A stretch of DNA of 64,000 bases from Vitrella brassicaformis CCMP3155. Lineage: Eukaryota; Protista; Chromerida. A program made the translations under genes and the position numbers. This document shows positions 1-3,124 of the stretch, one piece after another (position 1 is the first letter of the stretch; each line of letters begins with the position of its first letter). Under the pieces are notes generated by a model that was not told the origin of the DNA, made no database searches, and worked only from the letters and a program-made list of their open reading frames with translations. The stretch covers positions 1 through 64,000 of the forward strand of contig CDMY01000363.1 of the NCBI GenBank assembly GCA_001179505.1. Reading direction: 5' to 3'.

Positions 1-2590
1 GTGCGATGTCATCAAGGTGGGTGTGGTGTGACACGTGTCACAAGACCATCCATCCATCCATCCATCGGACTACCAGCCAGCCAGCCTGCCTCCTGCGTGT
101 TGGCTCCATCAGGCGGCCAGCTACCTCCACATCCCCCGTCTGATCCAGATAGCCCAGATCAAAATCGCACTATATCTGCGCGCGGTATGCGGCAGCCAAG
201 CAGGAGAGCTCACACCACATTAGGTGGTGATCGTCACGGTGGTGCTCTGCGTGCAGGAGAGTAGCCCTTCGGAGATCGCCATCTTGGTCAACAAGGCGAA
301 GGTGTGTGTGCGTGCACGGGAAGGCACACATACACACTCATTCGCCTGTGGGAATGAATGTCTGCTCAGGCTGTTTCTGTGGGGGCGTCGCCAGAAGATG
401 GCGGCCAGGTGAAGAGATCGGCCGAGGGCGAGGCCAAGGGGGCGTCGGGCAGCGGCAGGCAGCCGGGTCTCAGGCAGCCCTTGCTCGCCTTCGCCTCCAT
501 ACCGGTACGTGCGTAAAGCAATCAGGCAGGCAGGCAGGCAGATACACGACACGCGCCCAAACTCGTCCTTCGATCTGCTCGGTGTGTGTCTTGGGTCCGT
601 CTTTCGTCACTCAGTATGACGTGCTGGCTTTGACGTTGGCGTTGCTGCCCCTAGACCTCCTCTCTGCTGCGGCAGGCGCCTCGCTCACGCCCGTCGACAC
701 TCGAGAGTGGGAGGTGCTGGCCGCCAACTACACCCACCTCATCATCGACCACGACGACGCCAGTGCGACCTTCTTCGAGAAGCTCTCCTTCGCGGCGGCT
801 TACGAGTGGGGCAGACGGCTGCCGCACCTCAGGAGCATCACAGTGCGCCATCCCCGCCTGCTGGCGGCATGGTGTCTTCGTGTCGTCATCGGCATCGTGG
901 AGGGCCACGCAGAGGCGCGGGCAGCACTGGTGGCGGGGCGGCGGGAGGAGGGGCGGATACCTGAGGGCTCACTCGAGAGCATCACCTTCGAGCCAGACGA
1001 GGACCATGAGGAGGACATAGAGCAGGCTGACAAGGACAGCGAGAGCTTCAGGGAGGACCATGAGTTGCCCCCCGACGAGCTAGAGTCTGAGTCTACGCAA
1101 AAGGCGAGAGCGGGTATCAACAAGGCCCTGTCGCTGCTGCCCCGTCCCTCCACCCCATCCCCGTATCTGCCAGCCGTCAGGAGCATCGTCGGCCTAGCCA
1201 AGGACCACAACGCAATGGCCGACCGAGAGTGGCAGACGCCTGCTCTCGAGATGGTGACTGAGACTGTGGTGACCGAGCATGATTGCGTCCATGGAGTGGC
1301 CTACGGTCTGGACATGACCACACTGGGCAAGATCATCCAGACATCCGAGCGGCTGCAGGAGCTAGTGGTGACGATGGAACCTGACCCCTTGGCGGATGCC
1401 CTGTCCATGGTCCCACTGGTGGCAGTGGGGGAGGGGGGGAGACTGGTGGGGCGGCTGGCCGGCCTGAGATCGATCGGCACACTGCTGATCGACGGTACGG
1501 AGAGTCAAGACGCAGGACTGACGCGGCTCAAGGTACCAGCCGAGCAGGCACATTCATTGACGTGAATGTGATTGATGCCGTTAATGTACAGAGCGTGCTG
1601 CTGGAACGCGGGTGTCGATCGTTCGAGTGCCTCAGTGTGGAGTTCTGTCCCGTGAAGGCAATCGCATGGCCATGGATGGGAGGGCCGCTCTTCGCCACCA
1701 TCAGCGCGCTGGAGTCCTTCCAGAAGGCGCTCGGAGGCCCTCCCGTCGCTTTCAGAACTCCCCCACCCCCCACGGCATTCGTACTCCAAGGACACAGCGA
1801 CACCTTCTTCCTGCGAGACCTCCTGGACGTGCCCGATAGCCCCTCCCCTCTCTTCGTAGAGACGCTGCAGCATCTCGCCAGGAGGACGCGGAAGGTGGAG
1901 ATCTGTTTCAGCCCCCAGCAGCTGCTCGACTACCACCACCGACACGGCGCCATCCGACCTGCAGTCCATCGTGTCGCCAACAGCCTGATCTTCTGCACCG
2001 ACAGGAAGACGTTTGTCGAGATCTACCAGTGGAGTGGTTGGGATGGTGCTGATGCGACGGCGGCCATACGGGGGCTCGTCGCGTATCTCCTCCAATTACT
2101 GTGGGCAAGATCAAGATAATTGGCAACCTGTCAGGTGCCGAAGCTGTGGTCGGGGAAAAGACAAGGGGGCTGCAGAGCTACAGGGTGATCCTGGCCATGC
2201 CTTTGAGCTGCTGAGGGCGATGGGGGGGATGCGGGGGTCGAGAGGGCTGACGTGACGATCAACAACACGGGATCGCACCAGGATGCCCTTTTCTGGCGCA
2301 ACTGGGCCGAGAAGAGGGCAGACGAGCTAGCTCATGTCGAAAAGCTCAACGTCATCATTGCGCAAATCCTGCACATTCAAATCGTTAGCAGTGATTGGTT
2401 GTTGTGTGGATTGTATCTGTCTGTGCATGCAGATTTCCGATCGCATTCCGATGGCATGGCGGGTAAGGTGGCCTTCTTCAGGGCTGTCCTCGATGCGGTT
2501 CTCGTGCGAGCTCGCTTCCGCCAACTGAGGATGGGGATCGGTGGCCACCAGACTTTCGAGACGTCCTTCGAGAGATCATCCGTGGCGTGA
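1..2590 (+). CDS. 5'-truncated multi-exon gene: SKP1-like C-terminal segment, linker, F-box-like motif and a large lineage-specific (Vitrella-type LRR-like) domain
   Basis: Phase-0 GT-AG splicing gives ...CDVIK | AASYLHIPRLIQIAQIKIALYLRA (113-184) | ESSPSEIAILVNKAK (257-301) | AVSVG...LLAFASIP | YDVLALTLALLPLDLL..., then the long ORFs 306-1565 and 1562-2119 joined by an intron near 1533-1586 (GLTRLK|SVLLERGCRS). The first exons resemble SKP1 AANYL.I..L...TPEEI. The last exon (2252-2590) is uncertain. Confidence 0.6.
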
Positions 2591-2846: not shown

Positions 2847-3124
2847 GTCAGGCACGCAGCGGTCTGCCTTCTTATGACATACACACATGCACGCACCCAT
2901 CCATGCACATATCTGTGGACTCGGTGCATTTGCATGTGGGCCTGCGTGAGAAGCTTCATCAATCAACTGAGATGGACGCAGTCTTGTCAGGCACGCAGCG
3001 GTCTGCCTTCTTATGACATACACACATGCACGCACCCATCCATGTACATATCTCTGGACTCGGTGCATTTGCATGTGGGCCTGCGTGAGAAGCTTCATCA
3101 ATCAACTGAGATGGACGCAGTCTT
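2847..3124. repeat. Tandem duplication of a 139-bp non-coding unit
   Basis: gtcaggcacgcagcggtctgcc...gatggacgcagtctt begins at 2847 and again at 2986 with only a few substitutions. Confidence 0.95.

Follow-up and report, generated by a model that had tools for sequence, protein, structure and literature searches.

SKP1 and F-box proteins, the textbook case of an adaptor and a receptor that can be separated, are normally separate subunits of SCF (SKP1-CUL1-F-box) ubiquitin ligases, with one F-box protein replacing another on SKP1/CUL1 as a core feature of SCF regulation. In the chromerid Vitrella brassicaformis CCMP3155, a gene at the very start of contig C363 (GenBank CDMY01000363.1) is arranged differently, as a SKP1 domain is fused in one transcript to an F-box-like motif and a leucine-rich-repeat (LRR) domain of receptor type. 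The window, meaning the whole stretch of DNA analysed, is the opening 64 kb of this contig and contains the 3' two thirds of the gene. Like the canonical SCF pairs, such as SKP1-SKP2 and ASK1 with TIR1, COI1 or D3, the Vitrella proteins are predicted to combine a SKP1 fold carrying helices H5-H7 with a three-helix motif that stands right before an LRR domain of the RNI (ribonuclease inhibitor) type, and it is these pairs that supply the top fold matches. Unlike them, the Vitrella parts lie in one polypeptide, connected by a disordered linker and without helix H8 or the hydroxyproline region of SKP1, the motif resembling an F-box is too divergent for Pfam, and the LRR family is found in Vitrella only.

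Single-chain versions of the adaptor/receptor pair have been described in other settings. In fission yeast, the auxin degron i-AID makes use of an engineered Skp1-TIR1 fusion that works in cells as an SCF receptor (PMC8229956), so the design of a SKP1-receptor fusion is viable. This fusion has the same order as the Vitrella genes, SKP1 followed by an F-box/LRR receptor in one chain, but it is a man-made construct that keeps the whole of Skp1, H8 included, and on over-expression inhibits growth. By contrast, the genes of Vitrella are natural and spliced, exist in multiple copies and are devoid of H8. BTB proteins have been called single-chain analogs of Skp1/beta-TrCP1, their 3-box being analogous to the F-box (PMC3597819). 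The BTB/3-box CUL3 adaptors SPOP and KLHL11 likewise unite an adaptor fold and a receptor in one protein, and the BTB C-terminal/3-box bundle of SPOP gives the best superposition for the modelled Vitrella H5-H7 and F-box-like helices, at Z-scores of only 6-7. In contrast to these adaptors, the Vitrella domain is SKP1 by sequence, and the receptor is an LRR rather than a MATH or Kelch domain; given that the domain is SKP1 and not a CUL3-type BTB, CUL1 is the expected partner. A further likeness is offered by an ESM Atlas cluster named 'SconC protein' (diatoms, about 764 amino acids, Skp1 plus DUF4116), in which a SKP1 domain is also N-terminal in a long multi-domain protist protein, although SKP1 is paired there with another domain, an F-box-like motif is not among the reported features and the match is weak (template modelling scores, TM, of 0.46/0.22). 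SKP1 fusions as such are therefore not unique, while a literature search found no paper on a natural SKP1/F-box fusion.

The window opens within exon 3 of the gene (position 1 of contig C363), and the 5' part is thus cut off. Searches over the 72.7-Mb assembly (1064 contigs) located a counterpart at the end of contig C552 (locus L008; window position equals L008 position minus 7026), the final 839 bases of which correspond to window 1-839 with 3 substitutions. This end supplies the upstream exons for the N-terminal part of SKP1, so that the BTB/POZ half, which an earlier note made from the window sequence had proposed to look for upstream, has been found. A third near-identical stretch, 1.3 kb in length and 97% identical, is present on contig C167, and the three copies are mutually 97-99.6% identical.

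Evidence for the fused transcript comes from contigs of four public runs aligned to L008:6200-7865. Those of X1 and X7, which belong to different studies, are spliced and so derived from RNA, and those of X3 and X5 are unspliced and represent DNA. In X1, one contig of 692 bases joins exons 1-2-3-4-5-6 and continues as a loose end over the first 16 bases of exon 7, so a single RNA contig spans the distance from the SKP1 start codon to the F-box-like exon. In X7, one contig joins exons 1-2-3(-4) and another joins exons 4-5-6-7, reaching 136 bases past the last joint. Since spliced RNA crosses all of these junctions, a single mRNA carries the exons for SKP1 together with the F-box-like one, which contradicts the possibility of two separate genes that the earlier note had named as grounds for giving up the idea. 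Moreover, at the two bases of exon 7 by which the window differs from the C552 end, the X7 transcript agrees with the window, indicating that the window copy, or one identical to it, is expressed. Public model P0002 (CEM05699.1, partial; contig C363) uses identical exons, and P0002, P0003 and P0008 have the same domain architecture. The case for a SKP1 domain fused in one transcript to an F-box-like/LRR receptor is thus strong with regard to both the fusion and the SKP1 domain. Public model P0001, which describes the C552-end copy, skips exon 4 (L008:7139-7210, equal to window 113-184) and starts at an internal Met; this annotation is probably wrong, as the RNA contigs of neither study leave exon 4 out.

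The exons of the gene follow one another on the forward strand. The last 16 bases of exon 3 (1-16; full exon at L008:6971-7042, RNA joint 7040->7137) cover the region of SKP1 helix 4/5 and are followed by an intron (17-112, with an RNA joint) at the same position as the canonical Vitrella SKP1 intron that precedes AANYL. Exon 4 (113-184, 72 nucleotides, in the X1 and X7 RNA contigs) encodes SKP1 helices H5-H6 (AASYLHIPRL...), and the next intron (185-256) again has its position in common with canonical SKP1. Exon 5 (257-301, 45 nucleotides) encodes helix H7 (SPSEI...), with which, by comparison with human and canonical SKP1, the SKP1 domain ends. After an intron at 302-369, exon 6 (370-504, 135 nucleotides) specifies a linker with a high content of Gly, Ser and acidic residues, disordered in the model of the paralog P0003, and its final 8 codons (LLAFASIP, 481-504) form the start of the F-box-like motif, which is interrupted by an intron at 505-614 (an X7 joint with a side of 136 bases; loose ends of X1 on both sides). 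These four introns, namely 17-112, 185-256, 302-369 and 505-614, are all of the GT..AG type and in phase 0, that is, between codons, and all are removed precisely in the X1/X7 RNA contigs. The earlier note had put the junctions at 184/257, 301/~369 and ~505/~613 with four consecutive phase-0 introns; the phases hold and the joints are 184/257, 301/370 and 504/615, spliced out in two RNA studies, and the peptides that it quoted are present where it placed them.

Exon 7 as a whole (615-1532) is defined by the RNA joint at its 5' end and by P0002. By collinearity with the paralog model, its beginning (615-725) would contain the three helices of the F-box-like motif, H1 at about 615-638, H2 at about 651-677 and H3 at about 699-722. 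The remainder (726-1532), from YTHLxID onward and with an acidic insertion, is assigned by family search and fold model to the first half of an LRR solenoid. The following intron (1533-1591, GT..AG) is given by P0002 only and lies outside the coverage of the RNA contigs. Exon 8 (1592-2119, from P0002 and paralog alignment) encodes further LRRs and closes with a TAA at 2117-2119 that is premature relative to the paralog. A C-terminal coding remnant, homologous to the paralog but out of frame, extends over 2085-2540.

Protein searches were conducted with single exons or with the public models P0001, P0002 and P0003. Of these models, P0003 (CEM22146.1, 847 amino acids; locus L007) represents an intact paralog that is encoded by the minus strand of C552 at a distance of about 10 kb. 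In P0003, Skp1_POZ (PF03931) is found at 45.7 bits (E-value 7.7e-12; cut-off 21.9), with the paralog's exons 1 and 2 scoring 19.5 and 25.9 bits separately. Exon 2 of the window gene, taken from the C552 end, scores 20.3 bits (E 6.5e-4), just below the cut-off, and exon 1 is frame-shifted. In a phmmer search against sequences of the PDB, the top matches of P0003 are all SKP1 and the weakest is Elongin C; residues 2-143 align with human SKP1 2-135 (E 2e-11), covering H5, H6 and the start of H7. This alignment includes the segment in which the earlier note recognized a SKP1-like C-terminus, AASYL standing against AANYL and SP.EI against TPEEI, and the near-identical paralog segment to exon 4 aligns with human SKP1 104-130. 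In the ESM Atlas, the model matches SKP1 clusters at a TM of 0.80 by target. The window's own 45 SKP1-like residues, a short segment, have no PDB-sequence match at E<=10, and the piece of 24 plus 15 residues scores nothing by itself; the SKP1 identity consequently rests on the upstream exons and the paralog, through which the earlier assignment is upheld.

The origin of the SKP1 part can be read from the gene structure. Exon 4 is 35% identical to exon 4 of the canonical Vitrella SKP1 gene (contig C278), with identical phase-0 boundaries on both sides, and two introns, one preceding AA[SN]YL and the other preceding the (S/T)P.EI exon, fall at the same codons and in the same phase 0 in both genes. 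Judging from these shared intron positions, the SKP1 part is derived by duplication of a genomic SKP1 gene. The fused domain stops after H7, with the linker in place of H8 and of the TPEEE hydroxyproline region, and the canonical gene retains the stretch NDFTPEEE. A word search with P0003:1-150 returned no scored candidate, and a deep SKP1 alignment could thus not be built. Additional SKP1-like loci occur on C408, C47, C782 and, twice, on C808, along with an Elongin C gene on C275. Those on C408 (L015:2301-3154, with a run of unknown bases) and C47 (L017:2108-2200) are SKP1 genes or fragments with the canonical C-terminus (..NDFTPEEE..). On C808, two exon copies 7 kb apart (L010:2136-2231 and L010:9206-9301) encode an identical SKP1-like N-terminus of 32 residues (MIKVQSADGELVEIPLEAARRSN...) and are close to exon 1 of a fused gene on C648.

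The part encoded by exon 7 belongs to a large family, with at least 172 matches in a six-frame search of the genome. Among 1.84 billion representative proteins, 75 matches were obtained; of ten that were checked, nine belong to Vitrella, the remaining one being a chance match to a newt protein through repetitive sequence. Judged by these searches, the LRR family is found only in Vitrella, in keeping with the lineage-specific receptor-type domain that had been postulated from the window sequence and is now modelled as an LRR solenoid. Pfam names nothing in this large domain, its LRR models included. Nearly all members share the pattern LPxD/ELLxxVFxFLxPxELxxL....W about 40 residues ahead of the conserved YTHLxID. 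In three motifs of paralogs, the sole Pfam matches are to F-box or F-box-like models, at 12.5-14.1 bits, where the cut-offs are 20.5 and 24.3. When 49 motifs were combined in a profile and compared with 177,635 PDB sequences, the best match was the F-box of FBXW7, in register, at an E-value of 0.11, and hhalign aligns the family motif with 12 Pfam-positive Vitrella F-boxes over 42 columns in register (probability 72.7%, E 3.2e-5). In addition, a distant relative on C643 (L033:727-2118, an open reading frame of 464 codons) carries an F-box-like domain above threshold (25.2 bits) immediately followed by YKHLVI..FW and weakly matches the family hidden Markov model, at E 4e-7; this open frame may connect the Vitrella family with canonical F-boxes. 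The signals are weak at each step but consistent, and they provide moderate grounds, from sequence and model together, for taking the motif after the linker to be an F-box, as the earlier note had proposed from its L..LP-type pattern. On this basis, the unannotated proteins of the family are probably highly divergent F-box/LRR receptors. Among proteins P0004-P0075, a TLDc domain is present in 5 of 74 family representatives, and many representatives have N-terminal extensions of 110-500 residues, without a Pfam match, ahead of the F-box-like motif.

The order of SKP1-like exons, linker, F-box-like motif and family LRR recurs, so that the genome search for further fusions suggested at the outset has yielded this architecture at five loci. 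The first is made up of the C363 window, the C552 end and C167, documented by the RNA contigs and P0002, and the second is the C552 paralog with public model P0003. The third, on C225, corresponds to P0008 (CEL94714.1), which is 33% identical in exon 7 and has a short linker. The fourth and fifth, on C648 (L011) and C600 (L012), are known from genomic arrangement only. Three of the fused loci are much more divergent than the paralog, at about 33% identity. P0061 was considered as the product of the C600 fused gene and was rejected, as tblastn places it at another gene on that contig. In UniProt, P0003 and P0008 are labelled 'SKP1 component POZ domain-containing protein'.

Structure prediction was performed on full-length P0003 with AlphaFold2, using 77 aligned rows. 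A second job was run without the translations of canonical SKP1 exons, of which MAFFT had misplaced several, for example AANYLDI onto the family's AANYTHL. The full-length model has a predicted local distance difference test score (pLDDT) of 78 and a predicted TM score (pTM) of 0.74. Helices H5-H7 are modelled with pLDDT of 81-84, and residues 158-184 of the linker fall below 50, in agreement with the Gly/Ser-rich linker noticed earlier, which is acid-rich as well. Three helices follow at 199-206, 211-219 and 227-234 (pLDDT 59-79), the first LRR strand is at 239-243, and residues 239-828 alternate between strands and helices with pLDDT mostly of 88-98 and lower-confidence loops in between. When this model was searched with Foldseek, the ten best matches were all plant F-box/LRR receptors solved with ASK1 (D3, MAX2 and COI1; E 1e-7 to 7e-6, D3 at 1e-7), with TIR1 in 16th place and the LRRs of NLRPs and ribonuclease inhibitor later; the probability is 1.00 for D3, MAX2, COI1, TIR1, NLRPs and ribonuclease inhibitor alike. 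In VIA comparisons, which give Z-scores of 8-9 for the solenoid, SKP2 is matched at Z 8.6 (model 185-557 to chain 105-401), and the alignments with FBXL17, FBXL3 and other SKP2 entries (Z 7.6-8.6) start at model residues 192-195 and at the F-boxes of these proteins. The large domain is, as modelled, an RNI-type LRR solenoid capped by three helices.

The relation between the SKP1 part and the motif was approached through a model of P0003 residues 88-335 (pLDDT 79.7, pTM 0.66). In an exhaustive VIA comparison, its top matches are the BTB C-terminal/3-box regions of SPOP (Z 6.8, 6.6 and 6.1), KBTBD2 and KBTBD4 are also present, and ASK1 matches the H4-H6 part. In the best SPOP alignment (Z 6.8, root-mean-square deviation 2.6 Å, 60/64 residues), model residues 14-125 are covered, from SKP1 H5-H7 to the first helices of the motif, and the compactness of the target means that H5-H7 and the motif helices are packed together in the model. 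For the intramolecular SKP1/F-box packing that had been proposed for checking by structure modelling, this SPOP-like alignment offers a hint.

The copy in the window is damaged. Its exon 1, of which the C552 end offers the sole assembled version, is missing one G compared with the paralog, which leads to a stop after codon 12; the sequence with this deletion is present in the X1 and X7 RNA contigs and in the X3 and X5 DNA contigs, with no indel reported. At the 3' end, deletions of 13, 1 and 1 nucleotides relative to the paralog (at about 2085, 2178 and 2222, hence between about 2085 and 2225) leave the frame to close at the TAA at 2117-2119, beyond which homology to the paralog persists to about 2540. 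Given the stop in exon 1 and the three 3' deletions, a full adaptor plus receptor is unlikely to be made from the window locus, and the self-contained product imagined in the earlier note has its candidate in the intact paralog instead. Synonymous divergence (dS) between the window copy and the C552 paralog is as low as 0.016 in exon 7 codons 46-130 and as high as 0.96 in exon 2, a mosaic that suggests gene conversion. The window copy is probably a young duplicate in decay that is still transcribed and correctly spliced; any protein that it yields is probably not full-length and would lack N-terminal sequence.

The explanation that we favour, and hold to be fairly probable, is that of a spliced fused gene in which a SKP1 duplicate has been joined to a member of the Vitrella F-box-like/LRR family, with docking in cis in the intact members and damage to the window copy. 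The mRNA would encode a SKP1 domain (the BTB/POZ half plus H5-H7, without H8), a disordered linker of about 35 residues, the F-box-like motif and the RNI-type LRR solenoid, and would have arisen when a duplicated SKP1 gene was spliced onto a member of the large Vitrella-specific family. Most likely, the F-box-like helices of an intact member, for instance CEM22146.1, would fold back on H5-H7 of their own chain. The result would be a single-chain CUL1 adaptor and substrate receptor, the SCF counterpart of the BTB/3-box CUL3 adaptors, and such a protein would be independent of free SKP1 and of the C-terminal hydroxyproline/glycan region of SKP1. An SCF adaptor plus receptor in one chain is thus a candidate functional role. 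The wider proposition, that a natural single-chain SCF module has evolved and been kept in several divergent copies, with an H8-less SKP1 tethered to its own F-box/LRR receptor, is put forward tentatively and is, in our estimate, somewhat doubtful.

Several observations weigh against this explanation. The HMMER searches suggested by the earlier note recovered Skp1_POZ in the paralog, but PF01466, the C-terminal Skp1 model, has no match in the genome scan or on the fused proteins, and the F-box models of Pfam (PF00646, PF12937 and relatives) have none at E<=10 in P0001, P0002, P0003, P0008 or the motif segments. The single exons likewise give neither an F-box nor a PF01466 or LRR match with Pfam. 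With a coverage of only 2-8 sequences, the POZ half has a poor model (pLDDT 42-64). The Z-scores from VIA are middling, and LRR proteins without an F-box score as high. Foldseek with the 88-335 model finds nothing significant, and the hint of docking of the F-box-like helices on H5-H7 of the same chain is indirect, with Z-scores that are within the range of chance arrangements. The dN/dS values of the window copy against the paralog are 0.09-0.72 per exon but, as dS varies 50-fold among exons, are uninformative on pseudogenisation and give no clear signal of constraint. Finally, it is not proven that the C552 end and the C363 start form a single locus, the alternative being near-identical copies (3 differences in 839 bases).

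Some of these points would equally suit a protein in which the SKP1 domain is real but the motif is no SKP1-binding F-box and simply forms a helical cap at the N-terminus of the LRR domain. The protein would then be a scaffold, competitor or decoy that binds CUL1 through its SKP1 domain, leaving the H5-H7 groove free for F-box proteins in trans or for dimerisation. The absence of Pfam F-box matches in the fused proteins speaks for such a cap, as do an hhalign probability of only 73%, a PDB profile match of only E 0.11, the similar VIA scores of generic LRR and FBXL proteins, and the fact that the 88-335 model finds no F-box protein. Nevertheless, the motif has the F-box pattern, with three helices correctly placed before the first LRR; its sub-threshold matches are all to F-boxes and to nothing else; in the C643 relative, an F-box above threshold occupies this position; the alignments with FBXL proteins set in at the F-boxes of the latter; and the model packs the motif against H5-H7. 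We consider the cap unlikely.

The decay of the window copy, a component of the favoured explanation, could also be questioned. The copy may not be a pseudogene but have its translation start at an internal ATG of exon 2 (Met of ...KVMQWC...), the start that P0001 uses. The product would be without the CUL1-binding POZ core but would still contain a shortened LRR domain in addition to H5-H7 and the F-box-like motif, and might act as a self-capped substrate trap or regulator outside SCF. Transcription of the locus with precise splicing in two studies, an open frame of 565 codons from exon 4 to 2116 and dN/dS values of 0.1-0.6 for the SKP1 exons against the paralog would fit this notion. It is, however, at odds with the several short upstream open reading frames that precede this ATG on the mRNA, with four independent frame-breaking deletions in one gene and with the loss of the paralog's C-terminal 250 residues, and we rate it as improbable. 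That adjacent SKP1 paralog and LRR genes were merged by read-through or in a chimeric gene model is extremely improbable, for although the window begins at a contig end within a repeated gene, the C363, C552 and C167 copies are almost identical and P0001 skips an exon, two independent RNA studies span all junctions with canonical introns, and the same order of parts is shared by an intact, contig-internal paralog and by three much more divergent loci (about 33% identity).

In protists, oxygen-dependent hydroxylation and glycosylation of the SKP1 C-terminus tunes F-box binding (PMC11570480). If the wider proposition is true, the fused receptors would be freed both from competition for free SKP1 and from this C-terminal control, and the one-polypeptide design of the BTB/3-box CUL3 adaptors would be reproduced on the CUL1 branch. 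A natural cis fusion that has been retained repeatedly would show that the adaptor/receptor modularity of SCF can be abandoned. The intact members would also provide a ready-made single-chain SKP1/F-box pair for structural work and a test case for the role of SKP1 H8 and of the hydroxyproline/glycan site, given that the fused domains lack both and canonical Vitrella SKP1 keeps TPEEE. The window copy itself, being broken, is of lower value in this respect.

In the rest of the window, an Rfam scan over its whole length gave no match. About 0.7 kb past the stop of the gene, at 2847-3124, a unit of 139 bp is present in two tandem copies with 98% identity.

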